Assembly: GCF_006345805.1 (NCBI RefSeq)
Contig: NC_043004.1
Coordinates: 2,604,001-2,668,000 of the forward strand
Direction: 5' to 3'
Length of the DNA stretch: 64,000 bases
Source: Octopus sinensis
Taxonomy: Eukaryota
Shown here: piece after piece, positions 2,421 through 58,763 of the stretch
How the letters are laid out: every line of letters starts with the position of its first letter
How positions within the stretch are numbered: the stretch's first letter is position 1
Made by a program: the position numbers and the translations under genes
The notes under the pieces: model-generated
The model's input: only the letters and a program-made list of their open reading frames with translations
Told to the model about the DNA's origin: nothing
The model's database searches: none

Positions 2421-3145
2421 AGTGTAAAAGAAAAGCGGTGTTCATGGCCTTTGCTAATCTTCCTTATATGATAAACTTGATGGAGACGATCTACTTTTTA
2501 AACATCAACAGGGTTATGTTTGCAAGAAAAAGAGATTGTATATGGGGAGAATTTCAAAGAGATGCAATGCAATTCTAAGAAAGAATAGGTGGCAGATTTC
2601 ATTGCAGGAATAAGGAACTGAGATTTAATAAGCGTCAAGAAAGAGCGAGAAGAGAGACGTTTAGTTGAAGTGAGCAGAGAAAATGTTTAGTGATAATCAG
2701 AGGAGCAGAGGTCGATATTTTACTGATCGAGAAAACGGCGCTTCTGTGCAAAATTGGTTGTAGTATATTAGTGAGAGGATCTTTTTCAATTTGCTGAATT
2801 ACTTCGCTCTAGAAGTGACCTCGGTGTTTGTGCATGTACCACAATTTTGTTTCACTAAGAAATTCGGCAATACACGTCAAGGCTGGAATATTTCCTTGAT
2901 TTAAAGAAGAATTCTAGTTTTTCTAATATAGTTTTGGCAATGTTATATATATATAGAACCACCATATGATATCATGAGGCTCAGCAACAGAAATATTTTC
3001 AGGGGAAGATAAAGTTTTAAATTGTAATCGTTTTTATTAAAAGTAAATTACAACTTTGTACTTTCCTATTCACATAAACAACCGTATTTAGAATAAAGAT
3101 ACATGGAATTCTCACAGGATCTGTTTATATTTTTAGATACCATGT

Positions 3146-3641
3146 GGAGGTGCAATGGCCCAGTGGTTAGAGCAGCGGACTCGCGGTCGTAGGACCGCGG
3201 TTTCGATTCCAAGACCGGGCATATGAGTGTTTATTGAGCGAAAAAACCTAAAGTTCCACGAGGTTCCGGCAGGGGGTGGTGGTGAACCCTGATGTACTCT
3301 TCACATCTTCCTCTCACTCTTCTTCCTATTTCTATTGTACCTGTATTTCAAAGGGCCAACCTTATCACACTCTGTGTCACGCTGAATCTCCCCGAGAACT
3401 ACGTTAAGTGTAAACGTGCCTGTGGAGTAATCAGTCATTTGCACGTTAATAAATAAGCTGCGACGTTACTGCCAAGCTTTATCGTTTTTTTCCTTTCCAT
3501 TGAATAACATCGTTGGCGTGTAGAGAGGAAGTTGGTATGCATGGGCGACTGCTGGTCTTCCATAAACAATCTTGCCCAGACTTGTGCTTCGGGGTGTAAC
3601 TTTCTAGGTGCAATCATGGTCATTCATGACCGAATGGGGTC
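3146..3641 (+). mobile_element. tRNA-derived SINE family A, near full length (tail X)
   Basis: A box TGGCCCAGTGG and B-box-like TTTCGATTCC. Body shared with 19087-19561 and 43066-43437. Confidence 0.85.
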
Positions 3642-3904: not shown

Positions 3905-4105
3905 GTTGCCAACTTAATGTGGCAGTCCCAGGGAACAATGTTACTGTTATTTAGCCCCAACAAACACCGTTTCTAGTTGGCTACGCGACACAAGCGTTCT
4001 GTGTCCTTAAGTTTTCAAACAGGTGAGATAAGCACCTCAACAAAGCCAGCCACCAGAGACTAGTTTCAGGGTAATTGCCCATCATCAGTCTTGAGTAGCT
4101 TGGCC
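3905..4105 (-). mobile_element. Hammerhead-bearing non-autonomous element, family H2 (solo 3' end)
   Basis: Homologous over ~150 bp to both arms of the 63244-63664 fold-back; carries the hammerhead at 4053-4093. Confidence 0.75.
4053..4093 (-). ncRNA. Minimal type I hammerhead ribozyme motif (H2)
   Basis: Minus strand CAAGA-CTGATGA-TGGG(CAATTA)CCCT-GAAA-CTAG-TC-TCTGG: intact core, palindromic stem III ACTAGT, GUC triplet. Confidence 0.7.
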
Positions 4106-11749: not shown

Positions 11750-12390
11750 AGATAGGTCGCGTGATGCAAACTGAAAAATAGAATTAGAAACAAGATTCCA
11801 TATAAGTTCTTTGATTAATAATCGGCAGGAGTTACAGAGTGACTCAGGAGCACACCGTTTTGTGCGGCAGCACTTGTCAAAGGGGATTGAAAGCAATAGG
11901 GCATCTCCATATAGGGGTATACGTAAGACCTGGGAGAAACATTATGTTTGTTTAGGACTAAAAGCCTTCATGAACAGGAAAGCCTGAGAAAATACAAGAA
12001 ATGTTACACTGATCGAACATCAAATAATGATGTCAAGGATAATTTAATAAATGTATCGAGACAAAAAATGTCAGTTAATTAAAATTTCACCCGTGGCGAG
12101 GGAAAGGGTTTTTTCATATTATGACCAATTCTTATCATGGATAAGCATTGAGATAATCACAGATTATTAATCAAATTTAATATTAATTAGAATTAGAGCG
12201 AAGACACATGGGTGGGAATTTTAAGATCTGTATGAATCATTCCACTGAATATATTATTATTAATATTAACTTTAATTTTCATGCAGAGGAGGTCCCTGTG
12301 TATTTATACTTAGTTCATCTATCAAGTTAATAAGTGATTATATTTATTTACAAAATAAATATCTCGGGGTCTTTCTCTTTCGCGGAATAT

Positions 12391-17639: not shown

Positions 17640-18512
17640 GATATACACATACATATTGCATAAAGATGCAGTGTACTTATAAAGAAACCGAAGAAATACT
17701 CAATACCGTAATACAGTATGATCATTTTTGTAAACTCTGTTACCACCCCGATTTCCTGATACTTAAGCGTTTAATTGTTCGAGATTTTGAAGAACATACA
17801 CATATGTGCGTGTATGTATATATATGATTTCAATACGAAGCAAATAATTCTGATTAGATAGCTCTCTGGCCATTGCATTCCAATCAAATCTATTTTAGGA
17901 ACTAGCTTTTCCACCGTATCGTCTCTTTTATAGGAGAATGATGTGTCGTTTGAGTGATATTTGGATGTTATTTCTAGAAAGTTGAGTAACTTAGTCAAGG
18001 TTTATTCATTGGGGTTTTTTTCTTCTTTTTAGTAGAAACACTAATGAATTATGGTGACGAATTTCTTCCTTCATTGAAGGTTTGAGGATGTCTGAGACGA
18101 TAGAATGGACACCACCAGTAAGGCTACGGTATGTGTCCTACATCTGTAGTTGTAGCGTATCGGTATCCATTATAGATTATTCTCGATTGTTCTTCCCACA
18201 TAAAGACAATTACTTACAGCTCTATGCAGTGTATAGAGCCAGTTGTTGGCAGCCATGTTGAAGTGCTGCCTCCAAGAGTTTAGTCTATAATATATACTTC
18301 TACAGTTGATCTTAAATCTGCAATTTATCATACGCACACACTCACACACGCGCACATGTACACAAACATATGCGTGTATGTATATGACTGTGTGTAAATA
18401 TGTAAAAAGACAGTTTGTTTGCGTTTAGCATAAAACTAAATAGGCAGAAAAAGTGTGATTTTTTTCTTTCATATTGAAAGTATCTGCGTTAACAGCTTAA
18501 CTGATAAATATT

Positions 18513-18699
18513 ACAGTCCTATATTTAAGAGATGAGGAATTATGTACATTATTTACATTATTTACATTTGACGGATATTTGTCTTCATCTTGCTTGTTGT
18601 TAACACTACGTTTCGGCTGATATACCCTCCCGCCTTCATCAGGTGTCTTGGGGGAAATTTCGAACCTGGGTTCTCATTCCTTAGGTATTTTTCGATGTT

Positions 18700-18772
<73 letters not shown>

Positions 18773-18792
18773 TCACTGCTTGGAATCGAACT
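18513..18792 (-). mobile_element. H1 element (tRNA B box-(TAA)n-hammerhead tail), 5' truncated
   Basis: Co-linear with the copies at 45114-45559, 53576-53801 and 56921-57200. Confidence 0.9.
18602..18647 (-). ncRNA. Minimal type I hammerhead motif (H1), GUA triplet
   Basis: GACAC-CTGATGA-A-GGCGG(GAGGGTATAT)CAGCC-GAAAC-GTA-GTGTT. Confidence 0.7.
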
Positions 18793-19086
18793 TCACAGTT
18801 TTTGGTCTTTAATCAAGAAAAATGTGCTGGTTTTTAACTAAGGAAATTATAATCTCGTTGTCATCGTAACAGAAATTCCTTCATAATGTCTTCAATATTC
18901 CCCATCCTATCTACAGCATCATATTAAACTCTTCTTTTAGATTGTGTGTAACTGGAAATCAAACAAAATATTACTGTTGCATTTTGCAACGATATTCAAA
19001 TGAACGCTATGTAAGAAATGTCAAAAATTCGAAAAATATGTAGTAAAATATTGTTTACCTTATTTTGTCAATCATTGATATGTCGA

Positions 19087-31255: not shown

Positions 31256-31415
31256 CGCATATTTGCCATTTGAATATGGCTAACCCCTAAGGGTGGATGC
31301 TACTGTAGTTTGTAGCCCCAGGAAGATATCTCCTCCAGCTGGCTATAGACACACTATCTGTGTCTTCTCAGTATTTGTGAAGGGGAGTCATCCTCCCCGT
31401 ATTCAACTCATGATA

Positions 31416-31460
31416 CACACGGATCCGAGTTTCAAGGTGTTTACCTTTCATCAGCGTGTG
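31416..31460 (-). ncRNA. Type I hammerhead ribozyme (H4, minus copy)
   Basis: CACACG-CTGATGA-AAGGT(AAAC)ACCTT-GAAAC(TCGG)ATC-CGTGTG: perfect stems I and II, AUC triplet, one stem III mismatch. Confidence 0.8.
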
Positions 31461-31689
31461 ACAATCATGGTTGTCGACGAGAAGTCAGCTCCCTTCACAA
31501 ATACATATACTTTTTCCAGTGTCGATTGACACTGATAATGAAAAAGTGAAATCACGATGTGTTACCGCTACTGTATATAACTCGCTCTGAGATTTATCAT
31601 TGTTTGATTTCACTTTTTCAATATCAGTGTCAATCGACACTGGAAAAAGTATATGTATTTGTGGAGGGAGCTGACTTCTCGTCGACAAC

Positions 31690-31755
31690 CATGATTGTCA
31701 CACGCTGATGAAATGTAAACACCTTGAAACTCGGGTCCGTGTGTATCATGAGTTG
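31690..31755 (+). ncRNA. Type I hammerhead ribozyme with extended stem I (H4, plus copy)
   Basis: CATGAT-tgt-CACACG-CTGATGA-AATGT(AAAC)ACCTT-GAAAC(TCGG)GTC-CGTGTG-t-ATCATG. Predicted cut after C31737. Confidence 0.85.
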
Positions 31756-31952
31756 AATACGGGGAGGATGACTCCCCTTCACAAATACTGAGAAGACACA
31801 GATAGTGTGTCTATAGCCAGCTGGAGGAGATATCTTCCTGGGGCTACAAACTACAGTAGCATCCACCCTTAGGAGTTAGCCATATTCAAATGGCAAATAT
31901 GCGTCACGATGTGTTACCGCTACTGTTTATAACTCGCTCTGAGATTTATCAT

Positions 31953-39859: not shown

Positions 39860-39898
<39 letters not shown>

Positions 39899-39908
39899 AT
39901 ATATATAT

Positions 39909-40196
39909 ATCACGTGATCACGTGACTGACTAGACCATCAGATGTTGTTACACATCTGTTTTAGCCTTTGAATGACGCCACCCCGCTGGCTAAGCGAGCA
40001 GGCCAACAGAAGAAAGAGCGAGAGAAAGTTGTGATGAAAGAGTACAGCAGGGATCACCACCCTCTGCCGGAGCCTCGTGGAGCTTTTTTTTAGGTGTTTT
40101 AGCTCAATAAACACTCACAACGCCCGGTCTGGGAATCGAAACCACGATCCTACGACCGCGAGTCCGCTGCCCTAACCACTGGTCCATTGCGCCTCC
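39909..40196 (-). mobile_element. Family-A-headed SINE with alternative tail Z ending in (TCACGTGA)n
   Basis: Head ggaggcgcaatggaccagtggttagggcagcggactcgcgg; 3' half differs from 3146-3641. Confidence 0.85.
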
Positions 40197-40201
40197 ACGT
40201 G

Positions 40202-44992: not shown

Positions 44993-45198
44993 ACAGTTCT
45001 ATATTTAAGAGATGAGGAATTAAGTGCATTAATTACATTTGACGGATATTTGTTCTCATCTTGTTTATTGTTAACACAACGTTTCCGCTGATATACCTTC
45101 CAGCCTTCATCATCCAGCGGGCATATGGCGTAGTCGTTAAGAGCGCGGGCTACTAACCCTAAGATTTCAAGTTCGATTCCAAGCAGTGACCTACATAC

Positions 45199-45236
<38 letters not shown>

Positions 45237-45330
45237 TAATAATAATAAAATAATAATAATATAATAATAATATAAATAATAATAAAATAATAATAATATA
45301 ATAATAATAATAAAAATAATAATAATAATA

Positions 45331-45375
<45 letters not shown>

Positions 45376-45559
45376 CAACAACAACAATATCGAAAAATAC
45401 CTTAGAAATGGGAACCCAGGTTCGAAATTTCCCCAAGACACCTAATGAAGGCTGCAGGTTTTATCAGCCGAAAAGTTGTGTTAACAACAAACAATAATAT
45501 CCGTCAAATGTAAATAATGTAAATAATGTACATAATTCCTCATCTCTTAAATATAGAAC
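44993..45559 (+). mobile_element. Full H1 element (45114-45559) preceded by an inverted copy of its own 3' tail (44993-45112)
   Basis: A box TGGCGTAGTCG, B box GTTCGATTCC, (TAA)n, and a mutated hammerhead at 45437-45482. The ends read acagttctatatttaagagatgagg / cctcatctcttaaatatagaac. Confidence 0.9.
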
Positions 45560-48978: not shown

Positions 48979-49280
48979 CATATAGATATCCCTCCCACAT
49001 CCAAAACCTTTCATTTGTCAAACTGATTCCATATTCAAAACCATTGTGTTTACCCTTAAAGTAAGTATTCATTAACATCCGTTTCTCTTTTGAATATCAT
49101 TTTTGCTTGGTCGAATTTCCCTTTTATCCTTTTGGCGTCCATAAGACAAGTAACAAGCAATCTGTGTGGCAATTGAACCTACTCTGCGCTTCTTTAAAAT
49201 ATTTTGACTTAGTAGTGTTTACGTTAGAAAATATATTTTCCCGAGGTATTAAATATTTAATCAAAAGTATTTATGGTAAT

Positions 49281-49586
49281 GTGGAGGCACATGGCCTAGT
49301 GGATAGAGCAGTGTGCTCGTGTTCGACGGATCGCGCGTTCGAATCTCGGACCGGGCGATGTTTGTGTTTATGAGCGAAACACCTAATCTCCATGCCACTC
49401 CAGCAGAAGGTAATTGCGAACTTCTGCTGACTCTTTCGCCACAATTTTCTCTCACTGTTTCCGCCTGCATATTGCAGCTCACCAGCGACGGACCGATGTC
49501 CCGTCTAGGTGGGGAACCTATACACCAATGATACCCGGAAGCCAGCCTCTATGGACTAGGGGTGGCTCGACAAGGAACAAACAACA
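49281..49586 (+). mobile_element. Family-A-related SINE with tail W
   Basis: ggaggcacatggcctagtgg head; gcgacggaccgatgtcccgtctagg tail, related to 56327-56505. Confidence 0.7.
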
Positions 49587-49683
49587 CTTATAGCAATGCG
49601 ATTTTAGAATTATCTTTCATTGCCGAGTTTCATATTTCTGGACACGCATTTTCGTTTTTAGGCTCTCATTTTCGTTTTTAGGC

Positions 49684-52905: not shown

Positions 52906-53575
52906 AGTCTCGAATAATATCAATGAAATATACCGTGTCGTAGAATACGTCTTTATGCAGTGAATAATCTGTAAAAGAAAGAATGGTTCTGTTGAATTGC
53001 GGAAACAATCAACAGTCATGCAGTTCTGTTAAGCTCAACAGTAATAATTTACAGCGAAATCTCTTTACAGAATCTCTTTACAGTAGTAAGAAGTTTTTGG
53101 TATTAAAAAAATGCTGCAACAATTGCATAAGGAAAACCTTTAGATTTAGAGGTCGTAGACAGATGCCTTATCTGTTTGTTTCGTTTTGAATGGTATTCAT
53201 TTCTCCTTAACTCTTTTTCCAATTCCTAGCATACTCCCAGTTCCTTTATTTTGCACTGATATTCTTAGACCAAATCTCTTTCTGCTAAGGACTTCGGTCT
53301 TCCCTTTCTCCAGTCCCCTTCTTTGCATTTTCTTAATACCATTCTTCCAATTTCGATTATTCTCTCATTCACTTTTCTACACGGACGAACCAAAAGGGCT
53401 AGAAACGTTTTATTCTCCTAACAATAATTACCCTTCTCGAACACTCATATAAACCTTTCTCCGTTTCGGATTTTACACTGCAATATCTGATGAATATGGA
53501 CAATTTTGACTTTAATACTGAATGTCACCTAAAATATATCTACTACCTGGTAATTAAGTGTCAGAGAAGGAATTG

Positions 53576-53980
53576 TTCATTATTTACATTGTCCTCATCT
53601 TGTTTGTTGTTAGCACAACGTTTCGGTTGATATACCCTCCAGCCTTCGTCAGGTGTCTTGAGGGAGTTTCGAACCTGGGTTCTCATTCCTAAGGTATATT
53701 TTAATGTTATTATTATTATTCAGATCACTGCCTGGAATCAAACTAGGAATCTTGGGGTTAGTAGCCTGCACTCTTAACAAACTACGCCATATGCTCGTGG
53801 CAATTATGGAGTGAATTTTAGGGCTTATTAATCAAATATTTTCCTATCCTTCCATAACACCGGTTCCCATATGCTATTCATATCTGAACTCGGTCTGCTT
53901 AGGAAATTGTTGTGTCCTAGCATATGTGCTGCTTCTTTTAGTTTTCGTATTTTCCAGTGGTGTTCTCTGTCTATTATTTT
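53576..53980 (-). mobile_element. 5'-truncated Penelope-like element: GIY-YIG C-terminus, tRNA-like head, (TAA)n, hammerhead tail
   Basis: ORF tail at 53828-53980, head starting at ~53801, hammerhead at 53612-53657 (CTGACGA core). Flanked by a 9-bp direct repeat AAGGAATTG (53567-53575, 53981-53989). Confidence 0.8.
53828..53980 (-). CDS. C-terminal 50 aa of a Penelope-like GIY-YIG endonuclease (fragment, no start codon)
   Basis: Open frame KIIDREHHWKIRKLKEAAHMLGHNNFLSRPSSDMNSIWEPVLWKDRKIFD** resembles the PLE endonuclease end KILxxExxWxxRKxKEAxHI...LNR...IWxPLL. Too short for the ORF track. Confidence 0.75.
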   Translation of the reverse strand, partial: KIIDREHHWKIRKLKEAAHMLGHNNFLSRPSSDMNSIWEPVLWKDRKIFD

Positions 53981-56326
53981 AAGGAATTGCTGCTAGTTAA
54001 TTTTATCAATTTAGTGAGTCGAGAGATCATTTGAAAGACTAGGTTCGTATGAAAATTAATTGAAATAAAAGAATTCCTTGGCATAAAAAAGATTTTGGTC
54101 TTATGAGATATCCTTAGCAAAAATATTTGCGTGGGTGTATGATATTATACACACGTAGTTAAGGAGAATTAGTATTATATTTGCCATTGACCAGTGCTAC
54201 CTATTTTCTCCCTGTATGAGCATTTAAAGTTGACTGTTAATGGTCACGGCTTTAAGTATGCTAACTGGCTTTATTTTCCATGCGGATAATATATCTGAAT
54301 AATTTCTCACGAGAATTTAATATCTAAATTATATTTTCACATCAGTTTGAGTAATTCTTTTATCATTATTTAATGATTCTTTCATCACTAATTAAGCAAA
54401 TACGTCGAAGGCCATGTTTCGCTGACGATGTTTAATAAGATCGGATACACAGAATTGTCTCCCTTACCTACTACAATAATTTTAAAATATTCCTTATTCA
54501 TTAACACTGAGTTTCCTCATACATAAGTTAATGTATTTGTTTAATGCTCCCAGCATTAATATATTAACATTAACTGCTGTTTTTTTTTTGTTTTGTTTTT
54601 GTTTTTTTGCTTATCACATTTCTAATTAAGTTTTCTTATTTCTAGTATAAAGTATTTATAAAGTATATGTCATGCATGGTACTTTCCTGTTATTGTGGAA
54701 TAGTTCACCATAGTAACCAAATTTCTGTTCTGTCTATCTTTTCCAGCGATTCTAGCAGATGTTGCCACTGTATTAAGTATTGTATTACATCTACATCTGC
54801 TGTAATATAAGTCATTTCAAGTTAGATTTTAACAGACAGCTTTAGAAGGAAAACGCGTGAAAAAAGAGAAAATCTTGCGTTCTGGTTGCAGGATGGAATA
54901 TGACAACAATGGATTGTATCGAAGGCGACGAAAGAACTTGGGATGGTCATCTGAAATGGAAGCGAGGAGTTGAACAGATGCTAACTAATAGAACTAAATC
55001 CATCAATCAAGAAGAAATAAATGCTTGTTAAAAATGATTTCAGATGAGAATAAAACACTTTATTGAACAGTTTTGAGGCCATGACTTCTTTTTTGCTCTC
55101 CCTCCTCTTTTCCCCTTTCCATTTATATCACACCACATACGTTCTCTTCCTTTCTCTCTTATCCTCTCCTTCATTAACTTTATTATTCTCCTCTATTCCA
55201 TTCGGATTTTGGTTTCGTTTTTATTTTTATTTTTATTTTTATCTTCCTCATTTTTCGAAACTATCCCCCACTATGTCTTCCGCCTAACAGACGTTTCCCT
55301 CCGACTCTATTATCACTTTCTAGCGGTCACTGCCAGTACTTCTAGCAACGATTTAAAATAGATTTGCAAACAAAAACAATTCGAGACAATTTTTTTTTTC
55401 TTTTGTAAAAGATTGAACAAAAACAAACGAAAGGGACGTCTACATTTTTTTATATATATATTTTCAATTATTCTTTTATTTGTTGTATTTATTTATTGTT
55501 TGGTTTCACTGTTTAGACGCTGCATACAAATCCCATTTAGAGTGGCATTGTTACAGCGGGAATCACATCATATTGGATTATCGACAAGGTCATCTCAATG
55601 ATTACCTGTGAAACAATACCAACTCTATGCTATTTATTAGTTTTCCATGAGACGTCAGAACAGGTCGATGTTTCAGCTGAAACCCTTTTTTTTTTTTTCA
55701 TTTTTTGTTATATATATTTTCATTTTTTTTCTTCTTTTTATTTCCTTTTCTTGGATTCTACTCGACGTATCGCTCGCTTTTCACAACGCAACAAACACAA
55801 ATGACTTCTATTGGCAGACGCGTTGATAAAAGGATTATGGTCTCTAAATAAACTCTTCCTAAATATAAAGAAAATACAGCAACACTACTAATTTGAAACA
55901 TAAAAAACCAATACATTCTTTTTTCATTATGAACCCCAGCCCCTCCTCACTTTTTGCTACGATCCAAAGTCTTTTCTCTTTGCTCACTTTCATATTTCTC
56001 TTTTCTAATCTACGCACTCATTCAATGAGTTGATATTTTCCCTCCTATCGCTCTACTAGCAGTTTGATTTATTTCCATCTTCAACTTCCTCTCATTATTC
56101 TTCATATAAAATACAACAAAATAACCTTGGCAACGTGTCACTGATCTGAAAAGGGTCAGAGCTTGTCACCTTATTTAAACTCTTTTATATTTTTATATTC
56201 TTAAGGCATTTGGCAGATAAAATATTTAGCAGGACGAGTTTATGTCGATACTGAAAAAGGCGTAAAACAAACAGATTCGGCGTCGCAGCGATAGGTTTCA
56301 GACATATTTAACAGCGACTCCTGCTG

Positions 56327-56505: not shown

Positions 56506-56993
56506 GAATAACACAAAGTTAGTTTCTGAAGTGCTTTTGATGCTTCTTCCCAATACGCCATTTGTAGTGATAAGATTGAAAGGAGTTGCCTCGGCAAATT
56601 TATTGGTGTCAACAGTATTCTTCTAGATATGTGGGTAGTACTCTAATATTATTGATACCCGTACTCTCTTTAAAGAGTCAGCTATTCAGCTGGGACTTCA
56701 CAAGCAATTTTGGCAATGTTAATATATTTCCAGCATAAACTTTTATACCACCACTTGGCAATGACTGTCAATTCGGAGCCCAGTTAGAGTAAAATACATA
56801 GAAAATATTTCTCCTCATTTCCCCGGCTTGTTCTCCTTTTAGATTTACATTAAGCTGAAGAGCTCTAAGGAGAAGTTTAATTCTGCACAAAATGAGACGA
56901 ATGTTGAATCAAATAAATTTACAGTTCTATATTTAAAAGGTGAGGAACATTATTTACATTTGACGGATATTTGTCCTCATCTTGTTTGTTGTT

Positions 56994-57039
56994 AACACAA
57001 CGTTTCGGCTGATATACCCTCCAGCCTTCATCAGGTGTC
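56994..57039 (-). ncRNA. Consensus-like minimal type I hammerhead motif (H1), GUU triplet
   Basis: GACAC-CTGATGA-A-GGCTG(GAGGGTATAT)CAGCC-GAAAC-GTT-GTGTT. Confidence 0.72.
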
Positions 57040-57272
57040 TTGGGGAAATTTCGAACCTGGGTTCTCATTCCTAAGGTATTTTTCTATATCATTGTTATTA
57101 TTATAATTATAATAATTATTGTTATTATTTACGTCACTGCTTGGAATAGAACTCGTATTCTTGAGGTTAGTAGCCCGCGCTCTTAACCACTCATGCCATT
57201 ATGCTCTTAACCACTATGCCCACGGGCATATGGCATACTGATTAAGATTCCGAGTTCGATCCCTAGCAGTGA

Positions 57273-57319
<47 letters not shown>

Positions 57320-57360
57320 GTAATAGTAATAATAATAATAATAACAATAATAATAATAAT

Positions 57361-57770
57361 ATCTTGGCGAAAGAGTTTGACAAGCTCAGAAAATATAAAG
57401 ACCTGCTCATTGAAATTGAGAAAATGTGGCATCTCAAGGCGGTTACAATACCAGTGATCGTAGGAGCACTAGGATTGATCAAGAAGGGAACCGAAAATTA
57501 TATGAGAATGATCCCTGGCTTACCATCCCTGCAAGAAGTACAAAAGATTGTCTTAACTGGTACATCACACGTATTGAGAAGAGTATTGTCGATGTGAGAA
57601 CTATTACTACCCATGTATTGTAATTTAACTTTAAAAAAAATGAACGAACTAGTGAGTTTAGTTTAATGGCCTACCAATGTATACTGTGAGTTTCTTTGCC
57701 CTAGGAGTCGGGAAGACACTCGGCAAGAAATGGAAGCAAATTTAAAAGAAGAAAAAAAAGATAACAATAA
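57361..57770 (+). mobile_element. 5'-truncated Dong-like LINE inserted in (TAA)n
   Basis: ORF end, 3' UTR hairpin TTTCTTTGCC...GGCAAGAAA (57691-57730), A-rich end; TAA/CAA repeats on both sides. Confidence 0.8.
57364..57597 (+). CDS. C-terminal fragment of an R4/Dong-clade non-LTR retrotransposon (restriction-like endonuclease end)
   Basis: KLRKYKDLLIEIEKMWHLKAVTIPVIVGALGLIKK...QKIVLTGTSHVLRRVL matches the K..KY..L..E...W....PV..GALG...QK..L.GT..ILR pattern of RLE C-termini. Confidence 0.85.
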   Translation: MAKEFDKLRKYKDLLIEIEKMWHLKAVTIPVIVGALGLIKKGTENYMRMIPGLPSLQEVQKIVLTGTSHVLRRVLSM

Positions 57771-58763
57771 CAACAACATCGAAAAATACCTTTGGAATGA
57801 GAACCCAGGTTCGAAATTTACCCAAGGCAAATGATGAGGACAAATATCCGTCAAAGGTAAATAATGTAAATAATCCAAATAAATTTGTTCATAAAGCCAG
57901 ACTTCATATAATGGATTTAGTTTTGTATATCGGTAGATTTATATCCTGGCTTCAACTTGACAATTGAGCAGTTTTCAATCCTCGTTTGTATCACAAATTA
58001 AATGAATCAGGTTAAACAGAAACCTAAAATATTCGAGAAAATCTTTGCAATTATGCTACTTGCAGAATTAATTCCCTATCATACATATTGACGCTAAATC
58101 AAGTCCTCGAAAGACTTCATCAGAATTGTTTAAAACGTATCACAAACATCGGGTGGAGAGTTTTACACCTGGCCAGAAGCTCTGAAACCAGCTGGCTGCC
58201 TTGGTATGGAAGTTCACTTGATCAAATATCATACGCAATAGGTTAGTCATGTCATCTGTTTTTCTTTATGATTTAAAGTTTGCAAAGCAAATTAATTATT
58301 GGGAATTGGTTTTCGAGAAACGTCCCCGGCATTATTTCGTGGTGAAGTTATAAACAGTAAACTTAAGTCGTTCGCATCGTTTACACAAAATAGGGGTCAT
58401 TTTAAATGAAATTCTCGACAAATTTCCGAGCACCAAATGAAACAAAATTCGAAGTCGGCATCAGGCAGTCACATAAGTGTTCATAGACGGGAAGTTAACA
58501 TACCTGATACAGGTGTATCATTATAGGAAAATATGCTTAGGCATGAAACTTAATTGATGGTAATCACACACACACACAAAAACACGCATATTTACATATA
58601 CATATATATGGTCACATGCATATATATATATATACATGTATATGTATATGTGTGTGCGCCTGCGTGCGTGTACGTATGTATTGCATATACTGTACAAACT
58701 AAATATTTTTACCTTCCACATCCATTCATAGAAATAAACATTTGAATATATATACATACATGC

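Follow-up and report, generated by a model that had tools for sequence, protein, structure and literature searches.

To our knowledge, short interspersed nuclear elements (SINEs) are defined by their dependence on long interspersed nuclear elements (LINEs), with none of the accepted SINE classes relying on a Penelope-like element (PLE). Here we analyze a 64,000-nucleotide stretch of the Octopus sinensis genome (NC_043004.1, positions 2,604,001 to 2,668,000; the whole stretch is called the window), in which positions 53567-53989 probably represent a 5'-truncated copy of an endonuclease (EN)-encoding PLE. This copy consists of the last 50 codons of the open reading frame (ORF) and a whole pseudo-long terminal repeat (pLTR), here termed the H1 unit, and that pLTR would double as a source of SINEs that RNA polymerase III (Pol III) transcribes.

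Already known are PLEs whose pLTRs contain minimal hammerheads, as are their tails and inverted arms (PMC4209133; PMC11167929; PMC8557442). The H1-bearing element shares with them an ORF that joins a reverse transcriptase (RT) to a C-terminal EN of the CCHH/GIY-YIG type (GIY-YIG being assigned here by motif), pLTRs in partial tandem, inverted 5'-truncated arms, an optional 30-40-nt tail and an AC-rich hairpin after the ribozyme, as well as a minimal hammerhead with an extra nucleotide after A9, a G10.1-C11.1 pair, palindromic positions 15.2-16.2 and a short helix I. It differs in that its pLTR additionally contains a (TAA)n tract and a module of ~75 nt in which Pol III A and B boxes occur, and whereas the ORF of the anole PLE starts inside the ribozyme, that of a relative from a more distant host (locus L008) starts ~170 nt after it.

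The Sm-alpha and Sj-alpha SINE-like elements of schistosomes have been described as combining a Pol III promoter with a hammerhead (Ferbeyre 1998; Laha 2000, summarised in PMC6765202). Going by that summary, H1 resembles them in being a short, non-coding, dispersed retroposon with Pol III boxes and a hammerhead motif; Sm-alpha, compared here by description, carries a canonical type I hammerhead in which loops contact each other, and its autonomous partner is not identified in that account, whereas the ribozyme of H1 is of the minimal PLE type and H1 itself constitutes the partner's pLTR. Metazoan non-LTR retrozymes have been proposed to be non-autonomous PLE derivatives (Cervera & de la Pena 2020, PMC7229834), and retrozymes were recently argued to derive from PLE pLTRs (Li, Clavereau & Pollet 2026 preprint, 10.64898/2026.07.22.740005). 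Like H1, retrozymes are non-coding, hammerhead-bearing and related to PLE pLTRs, and PLE machinery is proposed for both; they form head-to-tail tandem arrays and circular RNAs with no promoter described, in contrast to H1, which occurs as dispersed singles or inverted dimers with target duplications and Pol III boxes. With tRNA-derived SINE/LINE pairs H1 shares a head with Pol III boxes, a 3' region identical with the partner's own, target-site duplications and a defined 5' end. Unlike in those pairs, the partner would be a PLE, the shared part is the partner's 5' leader, acquired via a tandem junction, and the SINE is already present in its entirety within the autonomous element; because RT starts internally in the PLE system, a defined RNA 3' end would not be needed.

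What appears to be new is thus the presence of putative Pol III boxes in a PLE pLTR, the closest precedents being the Sm-alpha SINEs, as summarised, and PLE-derived retrozymes. Nothing that combines SINE, Penelope, hammerhead and Pol III was found in the literature searched (subscription journals and Repbase/Dfam lay outside it), in keeping with the original prediction, made from the sequence alone, which knew of no description of this arrangement; the PLE, retrozyme and octopus-repeat literature within that search contains no tRNA-like boxes in a pLTR and no cephalopod PLE-SINE partnership.

The PLE copy at 53567-53989 and its pLTR

Coordinates within 53567-53989 are all read on the minus strand. 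An open frame from the AAA at 53980 encodes KIIDREHHWKIRKLKEAAHMLGHNNFLSRPSSDMNSIWEPVLWKDRKIFD and ends in TAA TAA at 53830-53825, with an in-frame TAG upstream of the fragment at 53995-53993. The observation that a 50-codon ORF and TAA TAA are followed by an H1 unit is confirmed by this direct reading, the intervening gap measuring 28 nt in place of the ~26 nt first given. The features of this ORF-linked copy of the window (c53) are as follows, in minus-strand order.

53981..53989, minus: CAATTCCTT, the 9-bp repeat in its 5' copy, immediately next to the point at which the ORF fragment is 5'-truncated
53825..53980, minus: PLE RT-EN ORF, last 50 codons plus TAA TAA; probable C-terminal end of the EN domain, with the family-invariant Glu of ..IIDRE.. 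kept
53797..53824, minus: 28-nt spacer GCCCTAAAATTCACTCCATAATTGCCAC from stop codons to head, homologous in L007, L009, L005 and L001
53722..53796, minus: putatively tRNA-related head of ~75 nt, with A box, hairpin-like GGC-TACTAAC-CC segment and B box, then CAGGCAGTGATC
~53706..53721, minus: short (TAA)n tract, (TAA)4, expanded to ~55-190 nt in four solo copies
53658..53705, minus: conserved box ..ACCTTAGGAATGAGAACCCAGGTTCGAAACTCCCTCAA upstream of the ribozyme, including a second B-box-like GGTTCGAAA
53612..53657, minus: predicted minimal type I hammerhead, with the cut predicted after U at 53617
53576..53619, minus: AC-rich hairpin GUUGUGCUAACAAC and leader 'tail' ..AAACAAGATGAGGACAATGTAAATAATGAA, the start of the PLE 5' leader; insertion end of the short-tail form
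53567..53575, minus: 3' copy of CAATTCCTT, a probable target-site duplication resembling the long-tail ATAATTCCTCAT

The relatives of the window peptide support its reading as the C-terminal end of a PLE RT-EN protein. It matches 8 short database proteins or fragments at 60-68% identity, its named protein relatives coming from Octopus sinensis only, and at the DNA level the ORF tail is 94%, 93.7% and 91% identical to those of O. sinensis loci L009, L010 and L012, respectively. An intact EN domain (CVYSIPCSCGRVYKGETCRPLRVRLEEHRK...IIDREGHWKRRRLKEAAHML) encoded by a Tara Oceans marine metagenome contig (L003) is 66% identical to the peptide across 47 residues. Among 1.8 billion representatives, a profile search identifies 6964 relatives; they include proteins of 745-834 aa with Pfam RVT_1 in mid-protein (E = 1e-11 to 1e-15) and a domain like the window peptide at the C-terminus, an order also seen in the full-length relatives of 826-834 aa. 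The relatives give PDB profile matches to RTs, telomerase RT among them, and RT motifs (GLAMGSPLSP..YVDDTF) lie upstream of the ORF tails in the relatives L001, L002 and L005. The window copy lacks the RT domain that its relatives carry in the same ORF because it is 5'-truncated.

In the full-length relatives, the C-terminal domain has the signature VYxIPCxCGxxYIGET...R...EH...H...H...E, and Y..C.C...Y.GET.R....R..EH, H-x5-H and a late E are invariant across relatives; the window copy retains the last part of this motif (IIDRE...). The invariant residues match the CCHH plus GIY-YIG pattern that is universal to PLE endonucleases (Craig et al. 2021, PMC8557442), and we apply the GIY-YIG label on these motifs and their context. 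Pfam gives no match on the window peptide, the EN domain or RT fragments, PDB profile searches return RT matches only and nothing for the EN domain, and hhalign against I-TevI (an approximate query sequence) aligns the IIDRE/IIERE stretch with a probability of 0.2. An AlphaFold2 model of the EN from a shallow alignment has a pLDDT of 49, and a JGI metagenome scan found no relatives. The peptide had been predicted to be a PLE GIY-YIG domain; the assignment to a PLE RT-EN C-terminus holds, given the identity to an intact EN domain, while GIY-YIG is a motif-level label.

The identity of H1 as the pLTR, that is, the inter-ORF region of the PLE, is solid at the level of sequence comparison and follows from three sets of loci. 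The O. sinensis locus L007 (CM016871.1) matches c53 as one block at 12032-12385, comprising ORF tail, spacer, head and hammerhead (396 nt, 80% identity), and since it extends upstream as far as the ORF N-terminal region, it is an independent copy with the same ORF-to-H1 junction. L009 reads 5'-truncated ORF tail, stop, GCCCTAAAATTCACT, an internal deletion, CATCTCTTAAATATAGAACTGTA, leader, then ..LARLSNHLTFLCRCRD.., the N-terminus of the next ORF. This is a partial tandem, from which the 'long tail' of the solo copies described below can be read as the PLE 5' leader. The same partial-tandem organization, which gives pseudo-LTRs, is seen in L008, where hammerhead, a 170-nt leader, ATG, ORF and 3' pLTR follow one another. 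Finally, spacer and box-bearing head have homologues in the diverged L001, L002 and L005, which share the ribozyme as well.

These loci bear out the prediction that H1 is the pLTR of a PLE, and in L007 another copy of the ORF does have the H1 unit downstream, with the tandem context seen in L009. The heads of c53, L007, c45 (a solo copy), L005, L002 and L001 are homologous, so that the box-bearing module is common to PLE lineages just 55-59% identical in protein, which makes it an old pLTR component; the proposal that one PLE 'captured' a tRNA promoter is imprecise. Of the original interpretation, the PLE peptide, the pLTR, the hammerhead motif and the insertion marks are supported; tRNA ancestry finds no tool support.

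The homology of c53 with L007 begins at TTAAAATAATAG, just after the 5' 9-mer, which places that 9-mer in the flank and not in the ORF sequence. After the AC-rich hairpin c53 reads ..AAGATGAGGACAATGTAAATAATGAA, and its tail reaches ~53576, with the 3' 9-mer following directly. The long-tail form runs ~35 nt further than ...AATGTAAATAAT, up to ...AATTCCTCATCTCTTAAATATAGAACTGT, so that the 3' 9-mer, as CAATTCCTT-CTCT, occupies the place where the long tail is expected to read CATAATTCCTCATCTCT. The 9-mer occurs 4 times in the window against 0.73 expected, the remaining two copies being unrelated. We considered it as plain element sequence, given that the 3' copy overlaps tail-like sequence, and set this aside on the exact 9/9 identity at both junctions, which favors duplication of a target site that had microhomology to the tail. 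The flanking repeat and its overlap with the tail had both been noted; the addition is that the tail of the long form continues for ~35 nt.

Predicted hammerhead and putative Pol III boxes of the H1 unit

The hammerhead string at 53657-53612 is GACAC-CUGACGA-A-GGCUG..CAACC-GAAA-CGUU-GUGCU, in which GACAC/GUGCU would form helix I, the core CUGACGA (CTGACGA at 53652-53646) is followed by an unpaired A, GGCUG/CAACC would form helix II, and GAAA (GAAAC at 53624-53620) leads into a palindromic ACGU. The 33-nt string has 3 matches in the window and 0 in shuffles, which, together with the box scan given below, excludes a chance occurrence. Across 14 aligned copies from five lineages the core is invariant save N7 (U, C, A or G), and helix II is 94% paired, with CG<->UA exchanges in 4 sequences and a GC<->AU exchange in 1; 82% of cells pair at the true register, compared to 23-51% when the register is slid. 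All four hallmarks that define the minimal hammerheads of PLEs (Cervera & de la Pena 2014, PMC4209133) are present: the unpaired nucleotide lying between A9 and G10.1, the G10.1-C11.1 pair, ACGU at 15.2-16.2 without helix III, and a short helix I. Rfam hammerhead models give no match, with the whole window searched at the gathering threshold and five sub-regions and loci at E<=10, where chance matches only were returned. We conclude that H1 carries a predicted ribozyme of the standard minimal PLE type, so that the CTGACGA core first proposed is retained and its type becomes minimal and helix-III-less in place of canonical.

Other hammerhead-like motifs occur in the window. A ~410-bp palindrome at 31380-31790 has a canonical-looking type I hammerhead in each arm, starting at 31454(-) and 31705(+) (CACACG-CUGAUGA-A-AGGU/ACCU-GAAAC-UCGG-GUC|CGUGUG), and probably represents a further PLE or retrozyme family whose insertion took the form of an inverted pair. 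Two more CUGAUGA...GAAAC motifs, at 4088(-) and 63476(+), have CCAG/CUGG flanks and are weaker hammerhead candidates belonging to a third repeat family.

The c53 head begins GAGCATA at ~53796, with an A box TGGCGTAGTTT at 53789-53779 and a degenerate, CpG-decayed B box AGTTTGATTCC at 53744-53734. In the copy at 45113, the A box TGGCGTAGTCG and an intact B box AGTTCGATTCC are 44 nt apart, and the A-to-B spacing of 44-45 nt among H1 heads is like that of tRNA genes. A combined scan for A and B boxes finds 5 sites in the window compared to 0.13 in shuffles, 2 of them in H1 and 3 in another SINE family. No part of the head is better conserved across PLE lineages than the boxes; the C of the B box is intact in the solo copies c45, c18 and c57b and changed in solo c57a and in the ORF-linked c53 and L007, and the GTTCGA of the conserved box upstream of the ribozyme is also retained in diverged relatives. 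H1 contains 0-1 T4 runs. At the sequence level, then, the head has the A and B boxes of an internal Pol III promoter, which we regard as putative. Further tRNA-like traits of the head, besides box spacing, are a loop-like CTACTAA (CU-ACU-AA, of the form CU-NNN-AA) on a 3-bp stem and a D-loop-like AGTGGTTAAG, which we take to be tRNA-Ser-like.

T4 runs on four PLE sense strands (L007:10001-12180, L005:3390-5660, L010 and L008) number 0, 0, 2 and 2, compared to 2.5-3.4 expected from dinucleotide shuffles, a difference that hints at avoidance of terminators but is not significant; A4 runs on the same strands number 16-30. T4 depletion as a hint that Pol III transcribes the whole PLE was dropped on these numbers.

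The second SINE family with tRNA-type boxes (..AATGGCCCAGTGGTTAGAGCAGCGGACTCGCGGTCGTAGGATCGCGGTTTCGATTCC..) lies at ~3140-3400(+), ~39860-40200(-) and ~49275-49600(+) in the window, and is 88% identical to O. sinensis L007:17896-18158.

Solo H1 copies and how they may arise

Solo copies were located by blastn of the unit against the window, MAFFT alignments and direct reading. We find H1 without the ORF at four further window loci, as first noted.

18512..18793, minus: solo H1 (c18), long-tail form, 5'-truncated within the head, start GAAGTTCGATTCC
44993..45112, minus, joined to 45113..45559, plus: inverted truncated arm and solo H1 (c45), the plus copy full-length, its (TAA)n long and its B box intact
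56921..57222, minus: solo H1, left arm of a head-to-head inverted dimer (c57), long-tail form, ends ...AGAACTGT
57224..57875, plus: solo H1, right arm of the inverted dimer (c57), short-tail form, ends ...GTAAATAAT

In their sequences, the solo copies show PLE-type insertion signatures and defined 5' ends. The c57 dimer lies between the two copies of an 11-bp duplication, CAAATAAATTT (56910-56920 and 57876-57886), which occurs nowhere else in the window. Inverted truncated arms are found in c45, L005, L008, L009 and L011, that of c45 (44993-45112(-)) ending within the hammerhead core, and the window contains no head-to-tail H1 array, its copies being dispersed or inverted. Short- and long-tail forms differ by ~35 nt, which we interpret as the PLE 'tail' and which two adjacent internal RT start sites would explain; the optional 30-40-nt tail of PLEs matches two RT start sites (Craig et al. 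2021, PMC8557442; Frangieh et al. 2024, PMC11167929). At the 5' side, the c57 arms meet at TGCCC-AC-GGGCA and the c45 plus copy begins TCCAGC-GGGCA, so that the 5' ends of the 3 full-length solo arms all fall at -7 to 0 relative to GGGCATA, or 12-13 nt upstream of the A box. Initiation from type 2 Pol III promoters is expected at about that distance upstream of the A box.

The whole solo unit equals PLE pLTR plus leader, and in this small sample it has the traits of a SINE: short, non-coding, dispersed, with a target duplication and a common 5' end. All four solo copies have a greatly expanded (TAA)n, far longer than that of the ORF-linked c53 or L007, which suggests a source lineage of their own. 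The 53567-53989 copy, by contrast, extends upstream into the ORF and derives from a longer, element-length RNA.

Two further observations concern the c57 dimer. The sequence where its arms meet could form a hairpin at the head start, TGCCC-AC-GGGCA (window 57214-57234), with a counterpart TGTCC-AGCA-GGACA in L005 (5793-5808) that differs by a compensatory C-G to U-A change; this may be a conserved structure, or else microhomology that joins inverted arms. At 57362-57750, the (TAA)n of the right arm contains a ~390-bp foreign insert, with an open frame that ends ..WHLKAVTIPVIVGALGLIKKGTENYM..VLSM* (no Pfam match), then an A-rich end. It looks like another retroelement's 3' fragment that landed in the TAA microsatellite, which we take to be Dong/R4-like behavior. 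In O. vulgaris, the LINE listed as most active is Dong-R4.

The best-supported reading of these data, and in our judgement a reasonably probable one, is a SINE mechanism driven by Pol III from within the pLTR; its steps of Pol III initiation, ribozyme activity and mobilization in trans are all proposed from the sequence. The pLTR runs from the ~28-nt spacer through the ~75-nt box-bearing module, (TAA)n, conserved box, predicted dimer-type minimal hammerhead and AC-rich hairpin into the leader, ending with the first 60-95 nt of the 5' leader of the next unit (the PLE 'tail'), the place where RT would start internally. In tandem PLE copies, the pLTR would supply a ribozyme that trims unit-length RNA and a leader site that the RT recognizes. 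With an internal Pol III promoter upstream of this recognition site, any pLTR could also be transcribed alone, from a start a few nt above the module, and because the resulting short RNA would hold the RT start site, the PLE RT-EN could copy it in trans. The product would be a SINE-like element of 300-450 bp, the solo H1, and since a monomeric minimal hammerhead should cut poorly, the SINE RNA would be left intact. It is possible, and we suggest it tentatively, that H1 thus represents a SINE class with a PLE in place of a LINE as its partner, and with a Pol III promoter as a standing part of an autonomous pLTR.

If so, each PLE insertion would create a possible source gene for SINEs, and with RT initiating internally a defined SINE 3' end would no longer be required. 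A role is suggested as well for a ribozyme that works as a dimer only, which would cut tandem PLE RNA and leave monomeric SINE RNA uncut. Here a SINE-like element is linked directly to a Penelope-like partner, and as one copy joins the non-autonomous unit to the autonomous element, the partnership can be read directly from the sequence. This bears on which partner mobilizes hammerhead-bearing SINE-like elements such as Sm-alpha, and on why animal genomes contain thousands of lone minimal hammerheads. SINEs are unusually abundant in octopus genomes, and a PLE-SINE partnership is open to test there; in O. vulgaris they make up 11.6% of the genome, with 893 unclassified families recently active (PMC13282606), and if general in octopods, the mechanism could account for part of this large 'unclassified SINE' fraction.

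Several points weigh against a Pol III SINE of tRNA origin that is mobilized by a PLE. Full-length solo 5' ends number three, two of them from one insertion event, and further full-length solo copies are absent from 115 kb of O. sinensis DNA around PLE genes. No head has an Rfam tRNA match at E<=10; ARAGORN makes no tRNA call from default down to 80% thresholds, its calls at 70-75% not being credible; and the head folds worse than its shuffles (minimum free energy -11.8 compared to -18.8 kcal/mol, z = +2.1), with no cloverleaf found and the acceptor and T stems unpaired. Such poor folding fits a promoter relic better than a role as RNA structure, and tRNA ancestry of the head is no more than plausible: of the tRNA-derived head first predicted, the A and B boxes, their tRNA-like spacing and the loop stand, while the Rfam, ARAGORN and folding results are all negative. 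The GIY-YIG assignment lacks profile or structure support from Pfam, PDB profiles, hhalign or AlphaFold2. Published minimal PLE hammerheads cleave poorly and need a dimer or an element protein (Cervera & de la Pena 2014, PMC4209133), and the minimal hammerhead is dispensable for insertion of the anole element in vitro (Frangieh et al. 2024, PMC11167929). The O. sinensis ORF-tail copies L010 and L012 lack a pLTR, breaking off 5-15 nt before the stop; because their ORF tails end before the stop codon, we regard these two loci as uninformative and not as counter-examples.

A serious alternative, which we nevertheless judge unlikely, is that solo H1 copies are by-products of PLE replication and not an independent Pol III SINE. 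They would come from Pol II transcripts that begin in the pLTR and on which RT starts ~300 nt downstream, the A and B boxes being a relic of an old tRNA-SINE insertion. PLE RT does initiate at internal sites close to the unit's 5' end (Frangieh et al. 2024, PMC11167929), the ORF leader is what forms the solo 'tail' in L008 and L009, and thousands of lone minimal hammerheads have been read as truncated PLEs (Cervera & de la Pena 2014, PMC4209133); moreover, few solo copies are sampled here, and the boxes are decayed in several copies. By-products of this kind sit poorly, however, with a common 5' end exactly at the Pol III start expected from the A box, with a (TAA)n that is expanded in all four solo copies and not in c53 or L007, as if from a source lineage of their own, and with boxes that are retained across the 55-59%-identical lineages.

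Two other explanations fare less well. The module comes just after the ORF stop codon in every lineage, and two O. sinensis copies, L010 and L012, terminate near the ORF end, as might be expected if the tRNA-like module were an RNase P/RNase Z processing signal that forms the 3' end of the upstream PLE mRNA and not a promoter. A head without a fold argues against this role, as do the negative ARAGORN and Rfam results and the conservation of the boxes but not of the pairings, and we consider a processing signal very improbable. Least credible to us is a coincidence, in which an unrelated SINE landed beside a dead PLE fragment and CTGANGA...GAAAC is a chance motif. The window does contain a single ORF-linked copy, and its hammerhead is Rfam-negative; against this, the junction is repeated in L007, occurs in tandem in L009 and has homologous pLTRs in L001, L002, L005 and L008, and the hammerhead shows covariation together with every minimal hallmark.

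Other repeats at the related loci

Two more repeats were seen next to or within related PLE ORFs. At L012:16290-16715 in O. sinensis, the PLE ORF tail is interrupted by a partly duplicated further SINE that has tRNA-type boxes (..GGCGAGCTGGCAGAA..GAGTTCAAATTCCGCCGAGG..) and is flanked by a GTATTAAGGA-type duplication. In L004:3252-4468 (ENA ERZ26693861), the last ~215 bp of the PLE ORF form a six-copy tandem satellite without the pLTR.

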